A stretch of DNA of 34,120 nt from Octopus bimaculoides (GCF_001194135.2 NC_068991.1:60183811-60217930); one strand, 5' to 3'; positions 400 to 30,553 are shown, counted from the first letter of the stretch. Made by a program: numbers and translations. Notes: a model not told the origin generated them from the letters alone.

Positions 400-840
400 T
401 CAAATGTATAGTCTCAGGAGAAATAATACAAAACTGAAGCAGAGTGGTTAAAGACATTCAAAGAGGAGAATATCAGCAGGTGGATTTGAGAATAACTGAG
501 GAGATTATTAGAGATCAGTGCAAGAAAAGGGAATACGGTTGGAAACTTCCGACCGATATCTTGTTTGCCACTGATGTGGAAACTGATGACGGGCATCATA
601 TCAAGCAACATCTATAAGTACCTAGGTGAGAACGATCTGCTACCAGTGGAACAAAAAGGTTGTAGACGTAAGAGCAGAGAAACGGAGCATCAATTACTAA
701 TCGATAAGACTATCCTGGCTGATTGCAAGAAGAGGCACAAAAGTTTGGCGATGGCATGGGTGTGGGACCATGTCATATGCATACAGGAAAGCATATGACA
801 TGGTCCCTCACTCGTGGATTATTGAATGCCGTGAACTGCT
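400..840 (+). mobile_element. R4/Dong-like reverse transcriptase fragment (degenerate)
   Basis: [12 protein letters not shown]...[14 protein letters not shown]...[23 protein letters not shown]...[16 protein letters not shown], typical RT motifs of RLE LINEs; frameshifted. Confidence 0.85.
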
Positions 841-1021
841 TAAGGCATGAACGTTATGAACATGAAGCATGAACGTTTGGAACAAACTTATGAAAACGCT
901 TTGGACAAGCAAAGTGTTAAGGAGTAGTTCAGAGGATAATTATTAATTGTGCATACCACCTTTTTTCTTTAAAAAAAAAACTACTTTTAATTCACACAAT
1001 AAACAATAACAAGGTACTTAC

Positions 1022-1163
1022 CCTGAATCGGTTCGTGCTGTAGTTGTGGATCTTCACAATAAACACAATACTACTTCAGTAAAAATGACAATACTGTAAA
1101 GCCGAATCAACAATATTCATCATACAGAAATAAGTGAAGACTCTCTCCTACTATGTTTTTATA
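1022..1163 (-). promoter_or_regulatory. Putative TATA box, short first exon with 15-codon ORF, and 5' splice donor (copy 1)
   Basis: Minus strand: TATAAAA 1163-1157, Inr-like TCACTT with A at 1135, ORF 1123-1076 (MMNIVDSALQYCHFY*), CAGG|GTAAGT with GT at 1021-1020. Confidence 0.5.
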
Positions 1164-1177
1164 GGCACACGCACACG

Positions 1178-1290
1178 TTTGTGCGTGTATGTGTGTGTAT
1201 GTGTGTGTATGTGCGTGTCTGTGTCTGTGTGTCTGTGTGTCTGTGTCTTTGTGTACATACATCTATGCACATGTACATGCATACACATGC
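1178..1290. repeat. Imperfect (TG)n/(TGTC)n microsatellite
   Basis: Direct inspection. Confidence 0.9.
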
Positions 1291-1493
1291 GATTCACCAA
1301 TGAAACTTCTTTCGATTATCTATAACATCCGTGAAATGTAAATGTTACATTCCTGTGAAGAGCATCCTGTTATGCTAATGAGCAGTGAAGACTGTATGAA
1401 AATACAACAACTTAACAACTTAAAGATGACCATCTAATGGGCTACACTCTACGAGGTTACTAATTTGCTAGAAATTAAAACTAAATTGGAATC

Positions 1494-1665
1494 ATGCTAA
1501 GCAGCGTTTTGTCCAACTTTACGCTTTTAGCTCAAATTCCGCCGAAATCGACTTTGCAGTTCACCCTGCCGGGTCGATAAAATATGTACCAGTTGAGCAC
1601 TAAGGTCGATGTAATCGTCTTACCCTCTCTCCTGATCTTGTTGGCCTTTTGCCAACATTTGAAAC
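1494..1665 (+). mobile_element. tRNA-derived SINE, 5'-truncated and diverged
   Basis: Similar to the SINE copies at 9861-10067 and, inverted, at 23605-23808 and 30345-30553 (tcaaattccgccga..gtcgataa..gtaccagtt..cact..ggtcgatgtaatcg). Confidence 0.8.
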
Positions 1666-1899
1666 GAATGTTAAACAATGAATTCTATACTGAACAATGT
1701 AGACTACGATGTACAAACATCGGAATGGTTACGGCTGGAAACTCATATTCACGTGTCTATTCAATCACATTCGTGTTGATACACGACAATACAAAAAAAA
1801 ATCAAAGAGGAAGAAATAAAACTGAACAACTACAACGATTTGAACTGAGAAATACGAAGATTGTGGTCAATGAGGAGAGAAGATGTGATATCAATAGTT

Positions 1900-2245
1900 A
1901 TACAACTCGGTATAGACCACAGCAAGAAGGTTGAAGAATTTGTTTAACAAGATCGTTGCGAACAATAACACGAGTCTATGAAGTAATATCAGGAGACACA
2001 CAAGACTTGATAGACTGTGCTCTAGTAACCAAAGGAGGTAATTCTATCATGTAATTTCGTAAATGATGTATGTAATCAGCCGGATCGGAAATTTTATCAG
2101 GAGTCTCAGGTGCGGTTTTCTCAGGAAAAGTGGGGATCCGTAGAGAAGTAATGCTTCCAACCATCTGTCTGAATGAGAGTGAGCACATGAAGCAGATTTT
2201 AGCTGACGACGAAATCTTTCTATCATTGCATTAGCTATGAGATGG
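1900..2245 (-). mobile_element. Ty3/Gypsy integrase C-terminal fragment (degenerate)
   Basis: HHLIANAMIERFRRQLKSA...WLEALLL resembles YHPQANGMVERFHRQLK (catalytic E region); DPADYIHHLRNYM...; RVIVRNDLVKQILQPSCCGLYRV resembles the GPY/F region. Confidence 0.65.
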
Positions 2246-2292
2246 TGAACCCTCATTCGATGTGAACCCTCATTCGATGTGAACCCTCATTC
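2245..2292. repeat. 17-bp tandem repeat (gtgaaccctcattcgat, 2 full copies plus 14 nt)
   Basis: Direct inspection. Confidence 0.9.
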
Positions 2293-2554
2293 AGACATAT
2301 GGTTGGGAGTATTATCGGTTGTTCTCTTAGGTTAAGGAATAGCGAGGCTTTTCTTCAGCGGAACTTCTCTACGCATCCCCACATTGCTTACCTAGCAAAT
2401 GATCGCACCTGCAACCCCTGAACAAATTTCCAATCAGGTCGAGATCACCAATTTTTAGCAAGACTGCATTTTTTTAGTAATAAAGGTATGTAATGTTGTC
2501 GTAAGAATTGCAGGTTAAGTCCTGATATATTATGTCCTCTCTTAATTGACATTC

Positions 2555-2735
2555 AAATAGATATTACATAACAACTGCAATAATTTTCTCATTCTCCTTG
2601 TGTACTCCCTACTGGCAATTTGCTTCATTTTTTCATGCCTTATTTTGTCTGTTTCTAGTATTCCCAAGTACTTATACCACTGTTCTTTCTCAATCGCTCT
2701 CATTGTTTGCCCATTTGGCATTTCAGTTCTCTGGT
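2555..2735 (-). mobile_element. R4/Dong-like RT C-terminal fragment
   Basis: Minus translation EMPNGQTMRAIEKEQWYKYLGILETDKIRHEKMKQIASREYTRRMRKLL (YKYLG motif). Confidence 0.75.
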
Positions 2736-2739
2736 GGTC

Positions 2740-3685
2740 AGGAAGATGTGAAAGGTGCGCTGAAAGAGATAATGTTCACATTCAGCATATCTCGAGTGCA
2801 AAACAGTTTGCGAGCATTTCAGTGCTCTTCAAGTCTGAAGCTCTGGTCACCAAACACTATGGTTTCCCGTGGGAGCGAAAAATATGTGCTCCACCCATCG
2901 CATTTAGGAAGCAGGACGGTGCAAATAAAGATATCAGGAATTTCACCGTAGGTAAATTTACGGTTGATTTTAGTGTGAATCGTTTTGGAAGGGGGTAATA
3001 ATCCCCTGGAGGTGAATCAGACCGGTCATGAAAATTGGTCTGAGACCAGTGTGGAGGTACTACACCCCGTTAAACTAGACACGGTCCATAAGCTACCTGA
3101 CCTCAGTTGCCTTCCAGGAGGGTAAGAGCTACATGTTACGGTTGAGGGTAGAAAGCCATGGTGCTACTTGTATGGGATAACAGGCTACTTGAGAGCTTTC
3201 TGTTCTCAAGAGAACACAGGGAACAATAGAACCCCACTACTGTCCAGAAGCCTCAACAAATAAACCAGCAACGATCAACAAGAAAAGTGGTACCATCCTC
3301 GGCAACTACAGCGTCAACAATAGGAACAGCAAAATAAGCAAATGCTGGAAGATCACCAGCATCAACACCAGCAACACCAGCAACACCGGCAGCACTAGCA
3401 ACACCAACAACATCAGCAGCATATGCACCACCACCACCACCACCTTCAGCAGTAAAAGAATAATAATAACGGACGCTCACAATACCCAGGGAATCTCCCG
3501 CTCCCTCCTTCTCCCCGTCTCTTCCAAACTCAAATACGATCGTAGACTCGTACCCCGACACCACAGACACAAATTCATCTGCAACACGCAGCGAAAATAG
3601 GAACACACCAAAATGCAAAAGCAAAAACAATAAATAAATAGATAAACAAATAATAAAGCGTAATAAAACATCAATCCCCACACAA

Positions 3686-3723
<38 letters not shown>

Positions 3724-3967
3724 CAAAAACAAAAGAACAACCACAACAGTCACAAACACACCTACAGCATTACCAACCTCTCCAGCATCGCACTCGTCAA
3801 CACATCTACTGCTATCACAACCAGCTCCACCAACACTACCACAACTTCAATAATCCACGAAAAGAAAACACCCCTAACAGCAACAACTAGCTACACGATC
3901 ACAAAACTTCGTGCTAGTGAGGAGAGCCAACTAAGAATTGATGGTCGTCGAAAGCACGAAAGAAAGA

Positions 3968-3998
<31 letters not shown>

Positions 3999-6900
3999 GG
4001 GGTGGGGTGACTGCGGCATCAACACCGTTCAAGTGCCAGAAAAAACTATGATGGTGAGAATGTCTCTAGAAACATAAAAACATCAAGGAGAGCTTCTCTC
4101 ACGATTTGGAGACCCCTAAAGTGAAATCCACGTGTAGTCTTTTAAGGGAGTTCTCAAAAGAACTTCAACAAGTTAGGGAAGTAGAACTACTAGACCTCCA
4201 GCGGCATCCGGTGGGTAAGTAGAGGTTTTTGTTTCTTCTCTAAACTCTGTGTAGTCATCATGGTGGCTTTCGGAGCCTGGAAACAAGGTCACCTGCTCAA
4301 CGACCTCAGGTCACTAGCTATAGATATGACGTCCGTCAGCAAAACCAGAATTTCCGACACATGATCTAAACCCCATTTTAATGATTTTAATATCTACGCA
4401 CCTCTTACTAGGCATGGAATGGGAGGTGGTGTGGCAGTGTTGTTTAAGAAAGGCCTGGATCTCGGGATACGGACGATCTACACAGATTCGGAAGGTAAGT
4501 TGGTGGTCCTATATTGAGCAACAGTGAGGGTGGTGCTTTTAGACTAGTTGCTGTTTACGCACCGACTGGGGCGGGACAGCAAGATCTCTTCAGACGTTTA
4601 GAGGTTTTCTTTGGGACGTCTCGCTCTTTAGTTCTAATAGGTGATTGGAAAGTCATCGTGGATGCACGCCTGGATAGGGAGGAGAGAGGGGTGTAAAAGC
4701 CTCACAAACTTGCTCAGTCGCTTCCAATTGGTTGACAGGTACCGACTGGATTTTTCGAATGCGCTAATGTGGATTTGGGCAAACAGCATCAGGTCTTCCG
4801 CATCGTATCTAGATAGAGTTTTTATAGATAGAGGCAGCATAAGTTGCTCACAATTCAAAGTCGTCGTTTACACAGACCACAAATTTGTGATCTCTACCGT
4901 CGACCTATATAGGATCCATAAGCAAGGCCCCGGATACTGGAAGCTGAATACGTTTTTGCCTGTGCGTCAAGCATTCAGAAACCGGGTTAGCACATTAGTG
5001 CATCGGGAGTTGTTGGGTGCAGTCATCAACAACCGATGGTGGATATCCCTGAAAAGGGCTATGGGTGTGGAGGTGGTAGAGTTTAGTAAAGAAATAGGGT
5101 TAAAGGAATCTAGGATAGAGGGAGAGATAGTTAGGAAGCTAGAAAAGGCTCTTAATTCTTCTATGCCAAGCACGAAGTTTCGATCGAGTGGCAGAGGTGT
5201 AACGTGACAACGAATCTACAATTCGGTCTTTGGGTGATCGGGACAGGCACACGCTAAACGAATTCAAGCAGATATGTGTAAAATTTCGGCGGTACTTTGC
5301 CGAACTGTACGGAGCGTACGGTGAATCGGAGATGGGGGTGGATTTTACCTCTTGCCTCGGCGTTATGCCTTGCCCTTTGGCCAGGGATGTGGTGTTCTGC
5401 GAAATGCCGATAACAACCGAAGACATACAGGACACGATGACGAGCTGCACAAAGAGAAGTCTACAAGGCTAGATGGTGTGCCTCTCCAGTTGTATCTTCA
5501 TATACCAGGCTTGTTCAGTAATCTCTTGGTGGAACTCTAATGCAACTAGTAGCAGAATGGAAGAACACCCAGTACTGTGAGTCCTAGCGTGGTGCTGCTA
5601 GTGAGAAAGGATCCGAATAAGGGGGACCAACTTGAAAATTTTAGTTCCAATAACTCGATTAAACGCAGATTATAAGATTTTAGCAAAGTTGCTAGTCAAG
5701 AGGTTGGCATTTATCTTCGAAAGGCTGGCGAATATCTTCGAAAGGAGGTGCACAGACATGCACTATCCCGACCAGATCTATGCACGATAGCTTCCAACTC
5801 ACGTGCTATCAAAAGGTTTTTGATAGGGCCTACCATTAATATTTGGAGGTAGACCTGTTTTCAAAGGATGGATCGCTGCAATGTACAGTGACAGCTGTTT
5901 GGTGGTCAAATTAATGACCACCTGTCGGAATTTTTTAGCATTGTATGTTCGATTTGTCAAGGATCCACACTCTCACCCCTTTTATACGCACTGTCTCTTG
6001 AGCCATTACTACGGAAGTCGGATGTTTCGATAGACTAAGATATTAAAGTTTTGTGTCGGTTTATGCAGACGACGTTAACGTAATGATATCTCGGACATCG
6101 ATGTGATCGGCACTAAACTAAGAGAGTACGAAACGGTGACAGGATCAAAGATTAACCAGAAGACGATGGGCTTGCAGCTCGACACCTGGAAAGGCAGATC
6201 CATATAGTTCGAAAGCGTCGTAGAGTGTAGGATGGAAGGACTGATTAGATCGCATGAGGCATGGTTTGGGCCGGACTTCTGGGTGGACAAGAACTGTGGG
6301 GAGGTGATGAGCAGGGTGGCCAGTCTCACTCAGACATTAGCAGTGAGGAAGTTGTCCATGAAAGGTTGGACATAGGTGCCGAACGCATAAATCGCTTCCG
6401 TCATTTACTATTGTCTGAGGAGCGTTCCATGGCCTACTTCGTGGCCGATCAATCTGGAGTGCTTGCTCTTCTATTTTCTGTGGAAGGGACGTGTATCGCT
6501 CGTCAGACGCTCCATCTGCTGTCAGCAGCCACTGAGTGGAGTACTAGGCATGCTGTGGCTAATGATGTGCAGATATGCACTGAGGCTGCAGCATCTCCAG
6601 CGTTTCCTTAACAGTGACCAAGTGTTCTCGCTGTTTGCCAGACTTGATTGTCCGCAGCTCGTCTCATTGATAGAGCTACAGACCTGCATGAAGTGCAGAT
6701 CGAGAAAGGGTACTTAACACCTGGTGTGTCGGCAAGCTTTCACAGTTCTCTGCCAGTTGGGCAATGAAGTCGGTATTGGAGTCCTATAGAGTTTAAAGGC
6801 AAGCAAGTGGTACGATGTCCTCGGGGTAACTTTTGGTGTTGGGAGAGATCAATTAGCTGGTCTTTTCCAGAGGATTTTCGGTCCTGGAAATCCTTGGCTT

Positions 6901-7285
6901 GGTAGTGCTACCGCGAATTTTGCCGTTTCGAGAGAAACTCTACAGGTACAGAAGTGCTGTCTGGAGGACTTGTCCAAGATAAGCAGAATTTGACGGAACT
7001 TTTCTGCATGCACTCGACTAGTGTCTGGACATTGTTGACTTGTGATGCTTTGACTAATAGCTGTTATCGCACGTAGGACGGATCCGGTTATTGACTGAGT
7101 CCACCGCCTTCTTTTAACCGGCAACAAAAGGCAGTTTTCCTCAGCTTGGTAGCTATAGCGGAAGAGATAGTGTGTGGTAAACGAGATTGAAAGGGCTGAA
7201 GAGAGATACTTTCCTCTTCGGTCAAGTCTTTCCTGACTTTTTCAAGTTCCACTTGAAAAGAAAGTAAAGGTGGCGTGGGAAAGTA
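2740..7285 (+). mobile_element. Tx1/L1-clade LINE, near full length, degenerate (ORF1 plus APE-RT ORF2)
   Basis: ORF1 remnant with decayed zinc knuckle VTVEGRKPWC-YL-Y-GITG-Y-LRAFC (3135-3203). APE: AWKQGHLLNDLRSL, GGGVAVLFKKG, RLVAVYAP, LIGDW, SYLDRVF, TDHK. GPGYWKLN at 4926. RT: CQGSTLSPLLY (~5955), YADD (6062). Many stops and frameshifts. Confidence 0.9.
3688..3721. repeat. (CA)n microsatellite within CAA/CAC low-complexity DNA
   Basis: Direct inspection; (GA)n also at ~3973-3998. Confidence 0.9.
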
Positions 7286-7289
7286 CTGC

Positions 7290-8820
7290 TACTAGTTGCG
7301 CACTACTACACCACCACCCGCTCCCGATAGACCACAAGATGAGGATACCTCATAGTCCTCGAAAATGAATGCTAGAGCGTGTTTTCCGGAGATCCTTGCT
7401 TCACTAATGGCAGCCACGTCCAAATCAAGTGACCTGAGATCATTGAGCAAGTGAACTTGCTTCCAAGCTAATCCCAGACCACTCACGTTCACACACCCCA
7501 TTCTCAGCACAGCCATGCTAGTCGGAGAAAGAAAATGAGGTTATTCACCTTGATTCTCGAGAAGACCGGAAGTTCCGGGCTTCTCTACTGGTGGAAAGTT
7601 TTTAAAAGGCCTTTCCAACAGTCTTTTATCAATAGATTTTTTTAATCCCCCACACTTCCAGGGAATTTTTTTTATCATAGTTCTATAAACGTCTGAGGAT
7701 GTTTTAATTAAGTCTGTCCTTGGGTGTTTTGAGGAGGAAATTCTCAAATTCTTTTCGCTCTGTCTCTATACTATTTTGATTTTGATTAACAAAATCCATT
7801 AATTCACTGTTACACTTGTTCACAACAGTGAAAGTGATGGATACAATTCCTCCACAGTTTGATGAATATTTTTTAAGTTCTGTAATCGGTTGTTTCTCTG
7901 TTTTTTTTAATTTCATGCTATTGATGATGTTGCTGTTTTCGAACTTGTTGATCTTGTTCTTGCTATTTTTACTGGATTGATTGTGAACTGTGTTGCAGTT
8001 GTGGTTTCAGAATAAGTTTTCGTTGATTTCTTGAAGTTGGGCTATGTACTATCCTCCTCTTTCGCACCCTAATCTTGGCATGACGTTTGCCGCGATTGCT
8101 GGGAATTAAAAAAAAGTTGTCGTTCCTCAAAGAGCTACCCTTTTTCCATCTCTTTTCACAATTTTTCTTGTTAATTGGAATTCTTCTTCGTTTATGTGGT
8201 AACTTTCCATATCTCTCGCCTCTGACACCAAAGACGCAGTGGCGATATTTGCGTTTCTATTTTATTTATTTATGTGTTTCAGCCAAGTGGCTGCGGTCAT
8301 GCTGGTGCACCTTCTTTTGCATTGTTGTTGCTGTTATTAGTGTTGTTGTTGTTGTTGTTGTTGCTGTCACTGCATCTTTTGTTGTTGTTGTTGCTGTCAT
8401 CTGCATTTTTTGTTGCTGCTGTTGTTCTCATTGTCGACACCGAAAGTTTTGACGTCATTAAGTTTAGTCCATTCTAAATTGATATTCTCAATTTTCCCCG
8501 ACAAGAAGCGCGTTTCTTTGTCGAACATTATGATGGCTTCTTTATCAGCCATCTTTAAAAAAATTATAGAAAATTGCAAAGCTGCTTTTGTTAAAATTCA
8601 AAAATTTTGTTAAACTTCAAACATTATTTATGCCCCCCCCCCCTGCAAAACAGGGGTGTTTCTACACAGAAATACTATCTGCGCAATCCAGACAATCTCA
8701 GAAACGGTAACAACAGAAATGAAAAGACCTTAGAAGGCCGAAAAGCTTACAAACACTTTCTCAACTTACGGGGCACCAAATTTCCGTGGCTTCACAGTAT
8801 GGCGGCCATAATAATGGTAA
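7290..8820 (-). mobile_element. 5' part of a second Tx1-like LINE (5' region/ORF1 remnant and start of ORF2 APE)
   Basis: ORF 7516-7292 MAVLRMGCVNVSGLGLAWKQVHLLNDLRSLDLDVAAISEARIS...GAGGGVVV is an APE N-terminus paralogous to ~4262-4440. The upstream K/N/Q-rich broken ORFs are assigned to ORF1 by position only; the right boundary is uncertain. Confidence 0.65.
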
Positions 8821-9177
8821 TAATATATGACCAAAATAAACATGTCCAATTTATTACGTGATAAACAGGACATATTTTCTTGCGTCCATGCATCATACAT
8901 AATACACATTCCCAATTTTTTCAACCATTAGATTATCTCGGGACTAATGAAAGGAAAGCTTTATATTACTCAGGACGTATGAAACAACGACTAGCTAAAA
9001 AAAACAAGCATGGACATTTACGACATACTTGTGTAAACGCTTTGGACAAGCAAAGTGTTAAGGAGTAGTTCAGGAAGTATCTATTAATGGTGCCTATCGC
9101 CTTTCTTTGTCACACACACTAAAACAAAAAAAAAAACAGCCTTGAATACACACAATAAACAAAAACAAGATACTTAC

Positions 9178-9337
9178 CCTAAAAGCATAGGCTCGTGTGG
9201 TAGTTGTGGAGTTCCACAATAAACATAATACTACTTCAATAATAATGACAACAATATAAAGCTAAAGCAAAGATATTCGTCATACAAGGATAAATTTAAA
9301 ATCTCTCTCTCCTTCTCTCTCTGCCTGTATATTTATA
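9178..9337 (-). promoter_or_regulatory. Putative TATA box, short first exon with 15-codon ORF, and 5' splice donor (copy 2)
   Basis: Minus strand: TATAAAT 9337-9331, ORF 9283-9236 (MTNIFALALYCCHYY*), TAGG|GTAAGT with GT at 9177-9176. Confidence 0.5.
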
Positions 9338-9338
9338 T

Positions 9339-9350
9339 ATGTGTGTGTGT

Positions 9351-9428
<78 letters not shown>
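9339..9428. repeat. (GT)n microsatellite
   Basis: Direct inspection. Confidence 0.95.
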
Positions 9429-9429
<1 letters not shown>

Positions 9430-9860
9430 ACTTGAGTTTCAAATCCCTTCAGTCAACAGCTGGTCTTAAAAGTCATATGAGGGCGCATCAACGGAATGCT
9501 TGTGCTGTGTGATGTGTGTTTGGATGGGAAGGTTATCAGCTGTCAAAATGAAACAATCATTTGTGTGTGTTTGTGTGAGTGTGTGTGAGTGTGTGTACAT
9601 TCATCTATGGACAAACACATATACATCTGCAACCCTCCAATTATATATTTTTTTTTGGGGGGGGGGGGGATAATCTACACTTACATTCCTGAAGTTTGTG
9701 CAGAACATCCGGTTATGTATTGAGAGGTACATTACTAACAGAAAAGACAATAACGATGTGATGCTATCCAACTTAACAACTTAAAGATAACAATCTAGTG
9801 TGAAACCCTCTACGCGATTACTAAATTGCTAGAAATTGCAGCCAAATCACCATCAAAATA

Positions 9861-10067
9861 CGCAGCTGGTAGAATTGTTAGTGAGCCGGGGAAAATGCAT
9901 AGCGGTATTTCGTCCATCTTTATGCTCTGAGTTGAAACCCCGTCGCAGTAGACTTTGTCTTTTATCTTTTCGGGATAGATGAAATAAGTACCAGTTATGC
10001 ACTGAGGTCAATGTCATCGACTTACCCGCTCACCCAAATTTGCTGGCCTTGAGTTAAAATTTGAAAC
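9861..10067 (+). mobile_element. tRNA-derived SINE (diverged, near full length)
   Basis: A-box-like AGCTGGTAGAATTGTTAG, B-box-like GAGTTGAAACCC, and a body shared with the other copies in the window. Confidence 0.85.
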
Positions 10068-10419
10068 GAATATTAAATTATGAATTCTACATTGAGCAAT
10101 GTAAACTGTAATGTACAAAAATCGGAATTGTCACGACTGGAAACTCTATTCACGCGTCTACTCAATCACGTTCGATCTAGTAGACAACAATATAACATAT
10201 AGAAAAGGCTCCATGCCCCCAAATAAAATTCACCTAGCTATCTGAGAAAAGTTGACAATACAGCGAGACTTTAACATGTAGAAGACTTTAACGAGACTTT
10301 AACATGTAGAAGGACCATCATGTAACAAAGAAATAGCCTGACGTAATTTTCCATCATAGATATAGCAATACTATTGTTACAATAGTATTGTTACAATCAA
10401 CATAGGATGCCAATATTGC

Positions 10420-10565
10420 TTTCTGGTGAAGGTACTCGCCGCGCAATCATGTCGCTTTAGGTTCAGTCCATCTTCGAGGCACTTAGTCAAATGTCTTCTG
10501 CTGTAACTCCGGACCGATCGACGACTTGTCAATGAATTGGGGAGACAGAAACCGTGTAGAAGCAC
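10420..10565 (+). mobile_element. Second SINE family, diverged 5' half
   Basis: Similar to 11371-11490 (ggttcagtc..., aaatgtcttct.ct.ta.c.c.ggaccga) and runs into (GT)n(AT)n. Confidence 0.6.
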
Positions 10566-16993: not shown

Positions 16994-17999
16994 TATTGGG
17001 TAGGCAACTAAGTTCCCGCCGTTTTTTTTAAATTCGGAATTTATTTTGTTTTTACATTTTGGAATTCTATTTTTGAATCATTTTCGAATCTATTTTTTTT
17101 TTCCTAATTAATTTTCGTTAATTTTTGTTTATTTTCAGATCATTAGAATGGAATGTCAAGTTAAGAAAAACGAGCATTTTCGACACCTTCTTCTTTTTGC
17201 TTTTAATCAAGGTTCTAAGGCGGCAAAAGCTGCTCGCGGCATTTGTGCTGTGTATGGAGAGGGTGCCATAGCTGAAAGAACCGCACGTGATTGGTATGCC
17301 AAGTTCAAAAATGGAAATTTTGACCTCAGAGACGCACCTTGTTCTGGCCATCCAGTGGAGTTCGATGAAGTGCGATTAAACCAACTTTTGCACAAAATTT
17401 CTAGTCAAACGACAAGGGAACTGGCAAAGAAAATAGAATGCTCCCACACTGCTACACAGAAGCATCTTCACTCGATGGAAAAAGTTCAGAAGTACGGAGC
17501 AAGGGTTCCACATGCTTTAAGTGACAACAACAAAAATCATTGAGCCACAATCTCCGCTGGTTTGCTTGCTCGTCACCGCTCAACTCATGCAACGATTTCT
17601 TTACCGAGTAGTTACTGGCGACGAAAAATGGTGCCTGTATTTCATATGAAGCAGCGTAAGGAATGGCTTAGCCCCGGTAAACAATTGACACCGCGCGTGA
17701 AACAAGATCTTCATCCGCGTAAAACGATCTTGTGCGTATGGTGGACTGGGAAGGGACTATCCATTATGAATTGCTTGAACGGAACCAAACGGTCAACGCG
17801 GAACTCTATGTTCAACAGATGGAACGACTCAACACGGCTATTCAAGAGAAAAGATCTAATCGGCAGCATGGAGTTCTTCTACTGCACGACAACGCCCGCC
17901 GTCATATCGCCAATATGACCAAGGAAACCATTCAAACGCATGGTTGGGAAGTGCTCCCACACCTGCCATACTCTCCTGATTTGGCACCAACGGATTTCC
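16994..17999 (+). mobile_element. Mariner transposon 2 (mellifera-subfamily-like; pseudogene, 3' end in gap)
   Basis: TA at 16994 then TIR ttgggtaggcaactaagttcc. ATG 17148 MECQVKKNEHFRHLLLF..., RVPHAL (WVPHEL), TGDEKW, HDNA, PYSPDLAPTDF. One stop and two frameshifts. Confidence 0.93.
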
Positions 18000-19432
18000 N
18001 NNNNNNNNNNNNNNNNNNNNNNNNNNNNNNNNNNNNNNNNNNNNNNNNNNNNNNNNNNNNNNNNNNNNNNNNNNNNNNNNNNNNNNNNNNNNNNNNNNNN
18101 NNNNNNNNNNNNNNNNNNNNNNNNNNNNNNNNNNNNNNNNNNNNNNNNNNNNNNNNNNNNNNNNNNNNNNNNNNNNNNNNNNNNNNNNNNNNNNNNNNNN
18201 NNNNNNNNNNNNNNNNNNNNNNNNNNNNNNNNNNNNNNNNNNNNNNNNNNNNNNNNNNNNNNNNNNNNNNNNNNNNNNNNNNNNNNNNNNNNNNNNNNNN
18301 NNNNNNNNNNNNNNNNNNNNNNNNNNNNNNNNNNNNNNNNNNNNNNNNNNNNNNNNNNNNNNNNNNNNNNNNNNNNNNNNNNNNNNNNNNNNNNNNNNNN
18401 NNNNNNNNNNNNNNNNNNNNNNNNNNNNNNNNNNNNNNNNNNNNNNNNNNNNNNNNNNNNNNNNNNNNNNNNNNNNNNNNNNNNNNNNNNNNNNNNNNNN
18501 NNNNNNNNNNNNNNNNNNNNNNNNNNNNNNNNNNNNNNNNNNNNNNNNNNNNNNNNNNNNNNNNNNNNNNNNNNNNNNNNNNNNNNNNNNNNNNNNNNNN
18601 NNNNNNNNNNNNNNNNNNNNNNNNNNNNNNNNNNNNNNNNNNNNNNNNNNNNNNNNNNNNNNNNNNNNNNNNNNNNNNNNNNNNNNNNNNNNNNNNNNNN
18701 NNNNNNNNNNNNNNNNNNNNNNNNNNNNNNNNNNNNNNNNNNNNNNNNNNNNNNNNNNNNNNNNNNNNNNNNNNNNNNNNNNNNNNNNNNNNNNNNNNNN
18801 NNNNNNNNNNNNNNNNNNNNNNNNNNNNNNNNNNNNNNNNNNNNNNNNNNNNNNNNNNNNNNNNNNNNNNNNNNNNNNNNNNNNNNNNNNNNNNNNNNNN
18901 NNNNNNNNNNNNNNNNNNNNNNNNNNNNNNNNNNNNNNNNNNNNNNNNNNTATATATGAATGTTAGATCCAGGGATCGAGATGTAGGAAGAAAGTTAGCT
19001 TCAAGCGATTCGTAGTAAACATATAAAAAACACAACTTTCAAGGACAATAGTGGTTTATTGAGACAAAAGGTTCTTTATCGAAGTACGATAAACTGAAAA
19101 CAGTTCGTTTTATATTTCACGGTAGGCGACCAGGGTTGCCGGGTGTACGAATAAGAATACAAAAGTTACGGAATGGGGTAGATAAGATCCGAGCAACATA
19201 TGCTTCATAGCGAACGTAACCTCAGAAGTGGCAAATATCCAAGTGAGGTGTATACCGTAGGCTACTCTTCTGGCTAAGAATATCTTGATTAAATGAAAGT
19301 TTACATTGCCTCAAGGAGGTTAACGCATGGAAGATTCAATCATAATCTGATATGTGTGTATGTATGTATGTATGTATGTATGTATCTGTATGTGTGTGTA
19401 CACGTATGCGCGCGCGCGCGTGCGTGTGTGTG

Positions 19433-21832: not shown

Positions 21833-23068
21833 TTATTTCTGCTTTAATCCTAACAACTTTTTTACTTCGTCTACAAAATTCTGATTCCTGCAACTGTAAA
21901 TAATTGGATTTAAACTTGAGTTAAGGTAAAACGTATGTCTTGCGAGCCAATAGAATATAGCTGTTGTTACTGACATTGTATCTTCGGATTTCAATACAGC
22001 GTTCACCATCATGGCAATAACGCAGGGTATATAAGTCACTATAAAGACTAGAGTAATCATCATCATTGTTACAGTAATGCGCTGTATCCTTTTGGTTTGC
22101 TCTCTAGCTCGTCTTTCGCTATCCGTCTCCCGTAATTTAATCGCGATAGGTGCAGTGTTTTTTGTATTTTTTGCACTTACGTTTGATGTATCATCCGATG
22201 ACACACCGGATGATGTTTCTGTTACAGACAATTCAACGGCTTCTACAGGTACATTAAAAACTAATTGATTACGATCAGTGTTTTTTGGTATATTACTCCA
22301 TCTCTGTTGTGTTTCATCAGAATATAGGGCACTTGTAACGTTCTTCCTATTTTGTTGTGATACAATAGTTTTTTTCTCCTGGACTTTCATTTTTCGAAGA
22401 ATTATGGTGTAAACTACACTGAGTTCAATGAACGCAAACACTGTTAAGAGAAGATAGAAAGCAAAGAATCCAAGTTGATAATAGTTTGGCTTCTCGGATT
22501 TTTTTGCTGAGCAAGAATAGCTATAGATATCAGGATAATTAGTTGATTTCTTGATACTTCCATAGTATAGAAGAGCAATGCTTCCCTGTATTGTGGAAAA
22601 AATAAGAATGGAAGCTGTTATAATTTTAGCACATTTCATTGACAACTGAGACTTCAGCGGTTGGCATACTTTTCTGTATCTATCTACAGAAATGGACACT
22701 AGAAAACCACAGTTACAAAGACCTGTAAAGACAGACAAACACATATGGTTCTTGCACAGTACGTCCCAGGTCGTCATCATGGGGTAAACATTTTGGACAA
22801 TGCGACCTGGTGATACAATAGCACAAAGTATCAAATCTACACAAGCCAGCATGACGACAAACAGGTATGTTGGGGATAGTTTTAAGCGAAATCCGTAAAC
22901 GTAAACTGTTAAAATGTTTCCAACGAAACCTATGGTCATTGTTAATATAACAAGAATGGTTGAAGGGATTCTTATCAAAACTTGCTGTCTGTTAAGTTCT
23001 TCGATGGTGACACTATATTCCGTACTGTTTGTTGTTACATTCTTCAGTAAATAAGTGAATAATGACAT
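21833..23068 (-). CDS. Class A (rhodopsin-like) GPCR, peptide-receptor-like orphan, single coding exon, ~411 aa
   Basis: Intact ORF with 7 hydrophobic segments: N-terminal sequons NVT and NST, TM1 GFVGN, TM2 LACVD, Cys at the top of TM3 and in ECL2, TM3 VDRY, TM5 Y, long S/T-rich ICL3, TM6 FIVTYIP, TM7 NSSLNPIIY, helix 8 F. Start placed at MSLFTY (23068) because the first part of the 23155 ORF is a polypyrimidine tract with a CAG acceptor. Confidence 0.93.
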   Translation of the reverse strand: MSLFTYLLKNVTTNSTEYSVTIEELNRQQVLIRIPSTILVILTMTIGFVGNILTVYVYGFRLKLSPTYLFVVMLACVDLILCAIVSPGRIVQNVYPMMTTWDVLCKNHMCLSVFTGLCNCGFLVSISVDRYRKVCQPLKSQLSMKCAKIITASILIFSTIQGSIALLYYGSIKKSTNYPDIYSYSCSAKKSEKPNYYQLGFFAFYLLLTVFAFIELSVVYTIILRKMKVQEKKTIVSQQNRKNVTSALYSDETQQRWSNIPKNTDRNQLVFNVPVEAVELSVTETSSGVSSDDTSNVSAKNTKNTAPIAIKLRETDSERRAREQTKRIQRITVTMMMITLVFIVTYIPCVIAMMVNAVLKSEDTMSVTTAIFYWLARHTFYLNSSLNPIIYSCRNQNFVDEVKKLLGLKQK

Positions 23069-23103
23069 CCTTTCTGATTTTCGAGAGTTTTTTCTATATT
23101 CAA

Positions 23104-23140
23104 TCTGAATAACAAAGAAAAAAAGAAAGAAAAGAAAAAT
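23104..23140 (-). promoter_or_regulatory. 3' splice acceptor upstream of the GPCR start codon
   Basis: Minus strand reads a long T/C tract ending ...ttctttgttattCAG|attg; the exon starts at 23104, 36 nt before the ATG at 23068. Confidence 0.75.
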
Positions 23141-23604
23141 GTTAAATGGTTTCAATTACTGCAACCACAAAGAGCCATTCTCACCAATATTAATTCTACA
23201 CTGCCGCTTATTGTGATTAATAAAGTCAATGAACTGTTTGTTTCTAGATGTAGCTTGTCCAGCTAACAATAAGGTTTGTGACAAAGAATTGAAGAAGATT
23301 CGGAGATATGAACTATTAGCATGGGAGATAAAACATTTGTGGGAAATAGAAAAGATCGCATGGTACTGTGAACACCAGAATTTAAAACTAATTTTTAAAA
23401 TATAGGGCAACATTAGTATGGGGCACTTACCATAGCAACACTCCTTGAAACAACTAGAATACTGAAAAAAATTCTGACAATTGAAGATACCACTTCACTC
23501 CACTTGTGAACAGCTGTCGCCGATATTACACCACAATCGACAAATTGTGTGAGAAAGCGGAATTATAACAATATGAACAACAACAATATTAATAATAATA
23601 ATTC

Positions 23605-23808
23605 TTTCTACTGGAAGCACAGGGCTTCAAATTTGGGAGAAGAGATTAAGTCGATTACATCTACCCCATTGCGTAACTGGTACTAATTTCATCGACCCCG
23701 AAATGATGAAAGCAAATCGACCTCGGCGGAATTTGAACTCAGAACGTAGCGGCAGACGGAATACTATTAAAGTCCGGCGTGTTAACTATTCTGACAGCTT
23801 GCTGCCTT
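23605..23808 (-). mobile_element. tRNA-derived SINE
   Basis: Reverse-complement copy of the 9861-10067 family (cctcggcggaatttgaactcagaacgta). Confidence 0.88.
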
Positions 23809-23950: not shown

Positions 23951-26900
23951 AGTTCCGGGTTAAATAACGTGGACATACACTAAGAAGCTCTCTCCACAAA
24001 ACAAATTCAGTAACATTGGTACAATGGAAGGAAAACTTCGCAATACAAATGTGGGAAAATTCTGTTAAAGCAGAGAAACTAAAAGACCGGAAAGATTTTT
24101 GTCACTTAAAGTGTAGTTTCTTTCTTAAATGCACGATATCTAAATGCAACATATGCGAGAAATCGAAACCAGCATCACGAAACCTGGAAAAACACCACTT
24201 GCACAGTAAGTACAGAAGTTGAAAAACTACCTATACATGCAACTGTCCACGCATCCATGTGCACATGTTAATATTTATAAGCATTATAAATAATGCCTAC
24301 TCGACACACACGAAAAATATAGAAAAAACGCGTGTCACGAGCGACGCCGTACCAAACAAAAACAAAGCGACTTCCCACAAACGAATATAAAAAGGAGTAA
24401 ATTAGTCAATCGGCTTAAAACATAACCAAACAGTTATGTCAGGGAACAAACCCACAAAAAAAAAATAGAGGCAATTTTCGATCTATCAGCCTACAATACG
24501 ATAAGTATATCCATTCGAAGAGTAAGGAAGCGGTGTCAGGTCAAAAATTCAACTCTGAACAAACAGACTCGTCTTCTATTGTCACTGTCAATGCCTTAAT
24601 GACAGACCAAAACTCATGCCGGATCGGTCAACACCCAGGACAACAAGGACAGCTTTACTCAGTGGGGAACCAGACTGGAGGCGAAAAGTCTGTTGCTGAA
24701 ACAAACACTAAAACGTGATCTACTAGGTAAACAAATCCAGGATAACCCTAACTCTAGGCCTGTAGCGACACCCCCAAAAACATCACCTAAAGAAAATCGC
24801 ATAAAATGGACTAGAGAGGATTATAGAGATGTGTTGAAAGCTTTCTATACAGCCCAACTATACCCAAACAATAATCTTAAAGTACAAACTCACATTTCAT
24901 GGAGAAACTGAGCAGGCAATGGGGTATGCAGATATATAGATGCAAATACGTACAATAATGTACATAGATACATCATTAAGACTAAAAGGTTAACTGACAC
25001 TGAAAATGGCCAAATTAGGACACAAATATCTCATGGTAGACTAAATGAAAACAGCAACAATGTAGATGAAATAGGTAACAGATGCACAGAACCCAGTGTA
25101 CGAGCAGTACATCCTAACGAGGAAGCTGAAGAAAGAGTAGCAAAGAACGGTTATGCGGTAAAAGAGGAGAAAGTAGACCTACCTCAAGAACAACAGAAGA
25201 GGTATGACACAGAATTTGAGGTGAAAAATTAAAGAGCATATCATAGAAACAAAAGAAGATATTATCAGAGAACTCAGCAAGACTGAGTGTACTGATATGA
25301 TCAATAGAGAACCGGCACCAAAGCTTTCAAACAGCATAAAAACAACGTAATCATATCTTAAGTAATAAGGGAAATGATCTAACAACTTTAAATAACCTCA
25401 TCTATTCCACTGCTAAAGTTGTGAAAGCTCAAGTAGGTATTAGGACGACACTGAAACAGACCAACCTGGTAACAGACCTCCCAAATGGAAAGTAGCAATG
25501 CAAAATGAGATCGAATCTCTGCGGGCGGTTGTATCAGTTCTCGATGAACTTTCTAGTGGAGTAAATGTTAAGACGAAACGAGGTAGAAAAATCAAGCAAA
25601 AATATAAAATCAACAGTTTTATAAACCTTCCTGCAACCAAGGAACAATTGAAACAACGAATACAACTGAAAACACAACGACTTACAAGGGATGATAAAGA
25701 AATCAAATTTTATCGACAAAGCAAGTTATTCAAGGCGGATGCAAATAAATTTTATAGAGAAATTGGCAAAAGTAAGATAGAAATAAAGGAGCCACCTAAG
25801 ACCGAGGAAATGGAAGAGTTCTGCAAGAAGATATGGAGCAATAAAAAAGAATATAATGCTATAGCTGACCGAATAGAGCATGAGAAAGTGAGACTGGATG
25901 AAGCTGAAGAGCAGAAATGGGAGGCAATAGGAATAGAAGAGCGAAGATGTGTTCTTAGGAAGTCTCACAATCGGAAAACCTCAGGACTAGACCAAATTCC
26001 TAACTTCTGGCTAAATTGTCCCACAGAAATACACTAAAATTTAGATGCATCTCAGACTGATGTCATCCTGACTGAAAGAACAACATACCTTCTACCAAGA
26101 AGTGAGGACACAAAAAAATCCAAAGAACTACCGACCAATAACATGTCTCAGTGCCACCTACAAGATTCTAGCATCCATATTAACTGACAGAATATGCGCT
26201 TTACTTGAAAAGAGATTTATCCTTCCACAAGCTCAAAAAGGTTGTAAAAGGAATTCTTATGGGTGCAAAGATCAATTACTCATAAGTAAAATGATTGTAA
26301 AGAATTGCCAGAGCATAAAGAAGAACCTGAGTATGGCATGGATAGACTATAGGAAAGCGTTTGATAGTGTCCCACATAATTGGATACTCAAGGCCCTTGA
26401 GATATATAAGATCTCTCCTGTCATATCCAAATTCTTACAAGGTAGCATGGCCAAATGGAACACACGTCTCCTTCTAAACCATAGTAATGGGATGAGCCAA
26501 ACAAACAACATCAAATAAGGCATCTTTCAAGGTGACTCCCTCTCCCCATTACTCTTTTGCATGGTACTGATCGCACTCTCAAAGGAAATGAATTACACAA
26601 GGTATGGATTCAAAGTTTACAATACGACAATAAATCATCTCTTTTAAATGGACGACCTGAAGCTGTTTGCTAGAAATGACGAAGCGCTAGTAGGGCTGCT
26701 AACAACTGTTAAATAATTCAGTAATGACATTGGAATGAACATTGACCTTGATAAGTGTGCTAAAGCAACTTGTGTAAGAGGCAAGCTCAGGCAAACAACT
26801 TCCATTAAATTAGATACCGACACTACCATCAAGGAACTTGACCCACAATAAAATTACAAATATCTGGCGATAAACGAAGATGATATACAACATGCTACTA

Positions 26901-30325: not shown

Positions 30326-30344
30326 CGTTAATTAATTATTATTC

Positions 30345-30553
30345 ATTTCAAATTTTAACACAAGGCCTTCAATTTCAGTGGAGGGTATAAGTCGATAGCA
30401 TCGACCCAGTGTCCAACTGGTACTTAGTTTACCAATCCCAAAAGCATGAAAGGCAAAGTCGACCTCGGCGGAATTTGAACGCAGAACGTAAGGACGGATG
30501 AAATGCCGCTAAGCATTTCGCACAACTCCGTAATTATTCGTCCAGTTCACCGT
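30345..30553 (-). mobile_element. tRNA-derived SINE
   Basis: Reverse-complement copy (aaaggcaaagtcgacctcggcggaatttgaac.cagaacgtaa...aaatgccgctaagcatttcg). Confidence 0.88.

Follow-up and report, generated by a model that had tools for sequence, protein, structure and literature searches.

A duplicated first-exon module upstream of a GPR22-like receptor gene in Octopus bimaculoides

A 34,120-nt stretch of chromosome CM046611.1 of Octopus bimaculoides (GCA_001194135.2), referred to here as the window, carries two related segments on its minus strand, module A (865-1794) and module B (9006-10195 as first delimited). These are very probably paralogous 5' ends of G-protein-coupled receptor (GPCR) genes, each made up of a core promoter, a short 5' exon and the beginning of intron 1, that arose via local segmental duplication in a tandem array of class-A receptors. 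In module B lies the first exon annotated for the GPCR paralog to the left of the window (XP_014770997.1, "G-protein coupled receptor 22" isoform X1; hereafter the GPR22-like gene), and module A lies in sense orientation inside intron 1 of the same gene, 29.2 kb upstream of its acceptor and coding exon. All positions are given in window coordinates (record coordinate = window + 60183810), the loci compared are labelled L003, L004, L008 and so on, and the copies in O. sinensis are marked with a prime.

The assignment of B to this gene was based on the following observations. A GPCR homolog search retrieved the O. bimaculoides paralog P0010 (isoform X2, XP_014770998.1, 403 aa), encoded on the same chromosome, as well as several O. 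sinensis paralogs. The cluster of P0010 comprises X2 and X1 (P0021, XP_014770997.1, 419 aa), a GPCR with PF00001, and the same X1/X2 pair is also present in O. sinensis (XP_036362953.1 and XP_029642744.1). By tblastn, residues 2-419 of X1 were placed in a single exon at L003 47378-48631 and residues 1-403 of X2 at 47423-48631, and the X1 gene record extends over L003 10001-48634, which corresponds to window 9188 down to -29445 on the minus strand. The first 11 coding nt of X1 (ATGCTTTTAGG) are the 3' end of the B exon, and joining them to exon 2 (ATTGAACAG...) gives MLLGLNRENTPQNWRRMSSY, the N-terminus of P0021. At the genomic level, exon 1 ending in ...GCCTATGCTTTTAGG|GTAAGT is joined to ...CCTATTCAG|ATTGAACAGAGAAAATACACCCCAAAATTGGAGAAGAATG with the same reading, and ...CCTATGCTTTTAGG|GTAAGT spliced to ...TATTCAG|ATTGAACAGAG... 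gives MLLGLNRENTPQNWRRM. The B donor (9178|9177) is thereby connected with an acceptor at window -28197 (chromosome position 60155614), which lies approximately 37.4 kb to the left and precedes the main ATG by 37 nt, across an intron 1 of 37,374 nt, of which about 7 kb is N gap. The ATG at 9188, situated 11 nt before the donor, adds 16 residues to give X1, and the B exon contributes 4 codons.

O. sinensis is annotated with this exon and junction too (ATGCTTTCAGG|GTAAGT, protein MLSG...), so that in the gene models of two species B is joined as a first exon to the downstream coding exon. Both modules lie on the same strand as the conserved acceptor and upstream of it (29.2 kb for A and 37.4 kb for B), and in O. 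sinensis the orthologous A' and B' stand in the same order upstream of the coding exon. The preliminary description of the window had predicted a minus-strand donor at 9178, proposed a gene to the left as one possible owner and named a GPCR paralog as a plausible target; all of these were in good agreement with the annotated model, in which the donor is used and the coding sequence of XP_014770997.1 starts in B and continues in the GPCR exon at L003. This gene structure is that of the NCBI gene models, and we infer that an 11-nt coding exon across an intron of 27-37 kb can only have come from RNA evidence.

The features of the two modules are listed below, the extents of the exon cores of A and B being taken from the match to an exon-core hidden Markov model (HMM).

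9178-9307, minus strand: exon 1 of module B, with its 3' end fixed at 9178 and its 5' end (putative transcription start site) placed by the conserved exon core
9186-9188, minus strand: start ATG of X1, shared with O. sinensis B' but missing from A, A', C and D'
9172-9177, minus strand: splice donor GTAAGT of B, where the ~37.4-kb intron 1 starts, kept in A, A', B, B', C and D'
8755-9171, minus strand: start of intron 1 ("left arm"), homologous in B', C, A' and two inverted partial copies near P0007 (L010)
9236-9283, minus strand: 15-codon upstream open reading frame (ORF) of B with TGA (MTNIFALALYCCHYY); in O. sinensis B' the start codon reads AAG, and C lacks an ATG
9325-9429, no strand assigned: putative core promoter of B, made up of a TA-rich, TATAAA-like stretch (9325-9337) and, on its upstream side, a (CA)n/(TG)n microsatellite
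9430-9865, no strand assigned: upstream part of B, including a ~140-bp frame resembling a C2H2 zinc finger (9430-9570) that is deleted in A
9866-10084, plus strand: short interspersed nuclear element (SINE) inside B, matching that of A in position; C, C' and D' have an empty site here
10085-10420, no strand assigned: distal upstream arm of B, in which homology with C extends past 10195 to about 10420
865-1794, minus strand: whole module A as surviving in O. bimaculoides, from self-BLAST and alignment (86.6% over 937 columns against O. sinensis L004 25026-25951)
1022-1148, minus strand: exon-like core of module A, whose last base before GTAAGT is 1022; the O. sinensis A' counterpart is at L004 25666-25951
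1016-1021, minus strand: donor-like GTAAGT of A, with TTCAGGGTAAGTACCTTGT identical in A and A'
1076-1123, minus strand: 15-codon upstream ORF of A with TGA (MMNIVDSALQYCHFY); in A' the first ATG is changed to ACG, and 8 codons follow from the second ATG
1156-1255, no strand assigned: TATAAAAA of A (TATA part 1156-1163) with the adjoining (TG)n-type microsatellite; the TATA is not conserved in A' (TTATACAG)
1494-1682, plus strand: SINE inside A, the positional ortholog of that in B, with a ~40-column deletion near its 5' end
544-844, plus strand: reverse-transcriptase fragment of a long interspersed nuclear element (LINE), outside the module (tblastn against the RVT_1 ORF at 26102, E 2.5e-19)

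The duplication that links A and B is far beyond chance. Self-BLAST of the window aligned 865-1254 with 9006-9420 (74.3% over 417 columns, E 2.6e-71) and 1408-1794 with 9769-10195 (69.9%, E 6e-54), and the ungapped blocks were 78-86% identical and colinear at a spacing of 8141-8402 nt, bearing out the earlier view of the two segments as colinear paralogs. A recount of the exon core reproduced exactly the 18 mismatches in 94 ungapped nt counted before, and the alignment confirmed the 4-nt difference in front of the donor as real, ATGC being present in B and replaced by a gap in A. The minus-strand TATAAA, ATG, 15-codon ORF and AGG|GTAAGT described for both copies, and the SINE embedded in each, were likewise all located. 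In A, TATAAA starts at 1163 and the ORF at 1123, ending in TGA, and CAGG|GTAAGT follows with 1022 as the last exon base; in B the corresponding positions are 9337, 9283 and, at TAGG|GTAAGT, 9178. Since the minus strand of the window contains 25 TATAAA and four GGTAAGT, such single motifs are not beyond chance, and their joint presence in A and B results from shared ancestry at approximately 80% identity. A 39-nt block (CTGAACTACTCCTTAACACTTTGCTTGTCCAAAGCGTTT, minus strand) located at 886-924 in A and about 9027-9065 in B is identical in the two against this background of about 80% and is also identical in B'; it is intronic and lies outside the exon.

While the homologous span assigned to A and B stood, its limits did not, as the true extent proved to be larger. 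B remains homologous to other copies between about 8755 and 10420 (8808 to 10420 in the alignment with copy C), and the left end of A is secondary. O. sinensis lacks the LINE fragment (544-844) at the orthologous site, where it retains the approximately 185 bp of ancestral sequence that the fragment replaces, indicating that the left end of A at 865 is a truncation; homology between A' and C runs 250 bp past this apparent end. A LINE 3' tail considered as flanking A on its right was not confirmed by tblastn.

The module had previously been regarded as an orphan, a status that it loses here because it belongs to a family located in the 5' regions of the tandem-array GPCR paralogs. A copy census by BLAST and HMM searches, covering 224 kb of non-redundant octopus sequence, a small sample relative to the genome, detected these further copies:

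O. sinensis L004 25026-25951: A', aligned over the full 937 columns
O. sinensis L004 9852-10027: exon of B', 92%
O. sinensis L004 10629-10791: intron start of B', 90%
O. bimaculoides L003 52057-52793: C, 3.4-4.2 kb downstream of the stop of the GPR22-like gene
O. sinensis L004 48316-48560: C', cut off by the end of the locus
O. sinensis L008 342-1431: D', 8.6 kb before the ATG of P0009, the next paralog

The further full copies were all in gene orientation, GTAAGT was found in every copy retaining the exon, and within the sequence searched the module was restricted to positions 5' of GPCR paralogs. The searches gave no copy in L001, the L002 upstream region (ortholog of the GPCR of the window), L005-L007 or L009 (within 10 kb upstream), and a module was not detectable within 10 kb of the Argonauta hians homolog. 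Of the two outcomes envisaged for a module search, additional copies were thus obtained, at GPCR loci in both octopus species, and hundreds of dispersed copies were not seen in the 224 kb; further copies probably exist in stretches beyond the sequence searched. Together with the gene model of B, these GPCR-linked copies indicated that the two alternatives offered earlier, a first exon of a gene to the left and a relic of tandem duplication, both hold.

The left arm (TTAACACTTTGCTTGTCCAAAGC ... ATATGTCCTGT) was also observed twice in inverted arrangement at O. sinensis L010 (4051-4456, minus; 4975-5350, plus), 5-6 kb upstream of the oppositely oriented P0007, with no recognisable exon or donor. 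This pair could be a relic of a head-to-head gene duplication, or a separately mobile or conserved element.

In contrast to the donor, the 15-codon ORF that had been described as part of the module is a feature whose start and length are not conserved in O. sinensis or in copy C. The frame has 8 codons in A', is missing in C and has 24 codons in D', and between A and B it shows seven amino-acid changes as against two synonymous-only changes. It is a chance reading frame and no functional upstream ORF. The signs of a promoter upstream of the exon are motifs only, that is, TATAAA or (TA)n followed by a GA-rich stretch (putative promoter). The "TATA" of B, B' and C consists of (TA)n repeats bordering on a (CA)n microsatellite, and the (CA)n-(TA)n-(GA)n arrangement is retained in B', C and D'.

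The gap-free pairwise identities (A-B 78-80%, A-C 65-76%, B-C 70-78%, C'-D' 92%, A-A' 89-91% and B-B' 92%) group A with B and C' with D'. Considering that the SINE site is occupied in A, A' and B and empty in C, C' and D', the SINE entered the ancestor of A and B after the split of the C lineage, and A and B were duplicated later. The proposed order of events would thus begin with the separation of the C, C' and D' lineage from the A/B ancestor, followed by insertion of the SINE into the latter, its duplication, the divergence of O. bimaculoides and O. sinensis, and finally insertions of transposable elements (TEs) specific to each lineage. With noncoding divergence between the two species at about 10%, the A/B duplication would be roughly twice as old as their split. 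The 5' module was copied together with the coding exon and also independently of it. No relic of a GPCR coding exon was found between B and A or between A and exon 2, where tblastn returned noise only (E > 0.02), which suggests that the A/B duplication involved the 5' segment alone, or else that a coding part resides in the 7 kb of N gaps. A 3.1-kb N gap lies directly left of the window (record 60180685-60183810, window 0 to -3125) and another of 3.9 kb elsewhere in intron 1, and features between A and the coding exon may be hidden in them.

The acceptor used by the GPR22-like gene, (Y)nTATTCAG|ATTGAAC..., located 36-37 nt before the ATG, is kept at six paralog loci, namely those of the GPR22-like gene and the GPCR of the window in each of the two species plus O. 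sinensis P0009 and P0004; P0005 differs. This shared acceptor indicated that a non-coding 5' exon followed by a single coding exon is the ancestral structure. In the O. sinensis array the genes are in the same orientation and 25-60 kb apart, with the exception of P0007 on the other strand. The GPCR of the window is encoded by a single exon (21833-23068, minus strand) with an acceptor (ttgttattcag|attgaatat...; 23069-23105, minus strand) 36 nt before its ATG, and this conserved acceptor supports the earlier proposal that its coding exon is fed by an unseen 5' exon. As no module copy was found in the 10-11 kb upstream of this gene, that exon must lie farther away. A side observation concerns P0004, a 409-aa GPCR, which is encoded twice on CM016869.1 of O. 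sinensis (L005 at 77.46 Mb and L006 at 10.30 Mb), with one locus near the chromosome end; the pair represents either a recent duplication or an assembly duplicate.

In Ritschard et al. (2019, PMC6408891), the target gene corresponds to Ocbimv22011019m (A0A0L8HMV5), a class A group 1 receptor in a cephalopod-specific expansion, which is expressed mainly in the sub- and supra-oesophageal brain, axial nerve cord, testes and viscera (Table S2 therein). The paper lists it with its neighbour Ocbimv22011018m as co-localised group-1 class-A GPCRs, and Table S2 gives a 25-kb model for this neighbour (Scaffold18222 33102-58024, 2015 assembly), whose start follows the stop of Ocbimv22011019m by only 240 bp. 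The 240-bp spacing suggests either read-through or that copy C is part of a shared 5' structure.

The assignment of A and B as paralogous GPCR 5' ends has several observations weighing against it. Copy C of O. bimaculoides shares just 72-76% identity with C' and D', so that the copies are not matched one to one across the species. Noncoding sequence of O. bimaculoides and O. sinensis is 90.3 +/- 2.6% identical, and relative to this the core of A, at 89% (29th percentile of noncoding windows), is not above the neutral background, and the exon and intron start of B, at 92-95% (78th percentile and above), are not clearly over it. Because the noncoding background is already 90%, interspecies conservation has no power here to reveal function. 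A' does not retain the TATA of A, and the use of B is based on NCBI gene models from two species and the RNA support inferred for them.

How A behaves is a separate matter. It keeps a consensus GTAAGT donor, has no in-frame ATG because of the 4-nt gap before the donor, the ATG of B having been created by the ATGC missing from A, and contributes no codons. A transcript initiated at A, if made, would plausibly give the shorter isoform X2 (start MSSY), and the existence of X2 in both species fits such a transcript. A stronger claim, and the one preferred in the preliminary description, would be that both modules act as first exons, each driven by a TATA-type promoter of its own and spliced to a shared coding exon, B giving X1 and A giving X2. 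The N-termini of the two isoforms annotated in both species are exactly those expected, and A has the correct strand, a position upstream of the shared acceptor, a donor identical to that of A', and TATAAAAA about 30 nt upstream of a GA-rich stretch. However, the TATA is not kept in O. sinensis, the core of A evolves at or below the neutral rate and faster than that of B relative to C, in O. bimaculoides the A donor is followed 157 nt downstream by the LINE fragment, and X2 may stem from another first exon or from a start site beside the coding exon. On balance, a pair of active first exons is a tentative proposition that falls somewhat short of even chances, and the same applies to A as a used alternative first exon; that A is silent or decaying appears somewhat the likelier case.

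The remaining explanations were found to be considerably weaker. That transcripts from any module (A, B, C, D...) might splice to several downstream coding exons of a shared-acceptor array, in which the modules are scattered among coding exons of like acceptor and orientation (seen at six paralog loci), is unlikely, even though the 240-bp spacing of the next gene model would fit read-through transcription; if true, module duplication (A/B in one gene, C'/D' in the next) would diversify expression within a cephalopod-specific neural GPCR cluster. Still less likely is an annotation artefact, in which neither copy is transcribed and the first exon of X1 is a spurious predicted junction. The gene-model basis of B, the weak context of the ATG at 9188 (C at -3) and the 5' leader past the acceptor, whose open frame is not retained in other paralogs, would be compatible with it, but an identical 11-nt exon and junction appear in the annotations of two species whose genomes were assembled and annotated separately, each gene needs a 5' exon given the acceptor conserved across the array, the donor is kept in six copies, and the GPR22-like gene is expressed. 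The least probable explanation, and a very remote one, is that the module, or its left arm of approximately 230-400 bp, is an unrecognised TE or dispersed repeat with a donor-like site, one copy of which was exapted as an exon. The two inverted left arms near P0007, the SINE and microsatellites within the module and the limited extent of the search speak in its favour. Yet the module copies contain no terminal repeats (inverted or direct), target-site duplications (TSDs) or coding capacity, their homology ends are ragged and vary among copy pairs, and all complete copies are situated 5' of a GPCR coding exon and share the orientation of the gene. In the sample, many dispersed copies in both orientations were not found, and the six other loci contained none at all, although the SINE is abundant there in both orientations; in the whole sample this SINE control gave 32 copies, 17 plus and 15 minus. 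Within the window, further SINE copies are at 23589-23764 and 30328-30545. The pre-SINE empty site in C, C' and D' is also what would be expected of ordinary DNA duplicated at different times. The absence of TE hallmarks and the GPCR-linked distribution of the copies were thus consistent with the earlier statement that the module cannot be assigned to a TE beyond its SINE.

Three tandem partial SINEs were observed directly after the B' donor (O. sinensis L004 10012-10644). Their TSD of 16 bp, GTAAGTATCTTG(T/C)TTT, duplicates the donor sequence itself.

With A and B taken as paralogous GPCR 5' ends, their organization can be compared with known systems. Mammalian olfactory-receptor genes have an intronless coding exon behind at least one non-coding 5' exon, and alternative first exons are frequent among them. 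The octopus genes resemble this type in having one coding exon, an acceptor tens of nt from the ATG (37 here), a short 5' exon, a long intron and a same-orientation tandem array, and differ from it in being a cephalopod-specific class-A expansion and in that the 5' exon of B gained an ATG and hence 4 codons. Variable-first-exon clusters are known from the vertebrate clustered protocadherins (Pcdh) and UGT1A, and duplicated or alternative first exons are known in many genes. Tandem paralogous first exons with their own promoter-like sequence upstream of one shared acceptor are common to the Pcdh/UGT1A type and the octopus gene; in contrast, there are two copies per gene in octopus, and the coding exons each have their own 5' module, with no shared constant exons. 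In addition, the octopus first exons do not encode a variable part of the protein, as B supplies 4 codons and A none.

The duplicated first-exon module is an ordinary by-product of tandem gene-family expansion, it reveals no new kind of regulatory architecture, and half of the pair (B) is already captured by public annotation. This analysis describes, on the basis of sequence, the module family, its chronology and the extra intronic copy. Tandem promoter duplication was offered as a possible explanation of co-expressed GPCR clusters by Ritschard et al. (2019, PMC6408891), whose paper provides gene models and expression; no mention of a duplicated 5' exon or promoter was found in the passages and supplementary tables searched. 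The modules described here provide a concrete sequence-level case of promoter/first-exon duplication in a cephalopod-specific GPCR expansion. They also fix how the genes of the array are built: the 5' exon is non-coding, the intron measures tens of kb, and the only coding exon carries the conserved acceptor. This structure aids the annotation of neighbours, including the GPCR of the window with its still unlocated 5' exon.

Several minor observations were made in the rest of the window. The piece of approximately 140 bp at 9430-9570, in the microsatellite region of B, carries a frame resembling a C2H2 zinc finger (SFKSLQSTAGLKSHMRAHQRNACAV); it gave no match in Pfam, for which it is too short, and its presence in O. 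sinensis (L004 5449-5819) indicates that it is ancestral and was deleted in A. Scans of the window for tRNA genes and Rfam families returned no match. A remnant of a Mos1/mariner-type transposase (Pfam HTH_48 and Transposase_1) with an N gap inside it occupies 17148-19000, and the LINE reverse-transcriptase ORF (RVT_1, Pfam) extends over 26102-26515. Finally, the segment 13000-15000 is C-rich, with a GC skew of about -0.4 and a GC content of 45-50%, unlike its surroundings.

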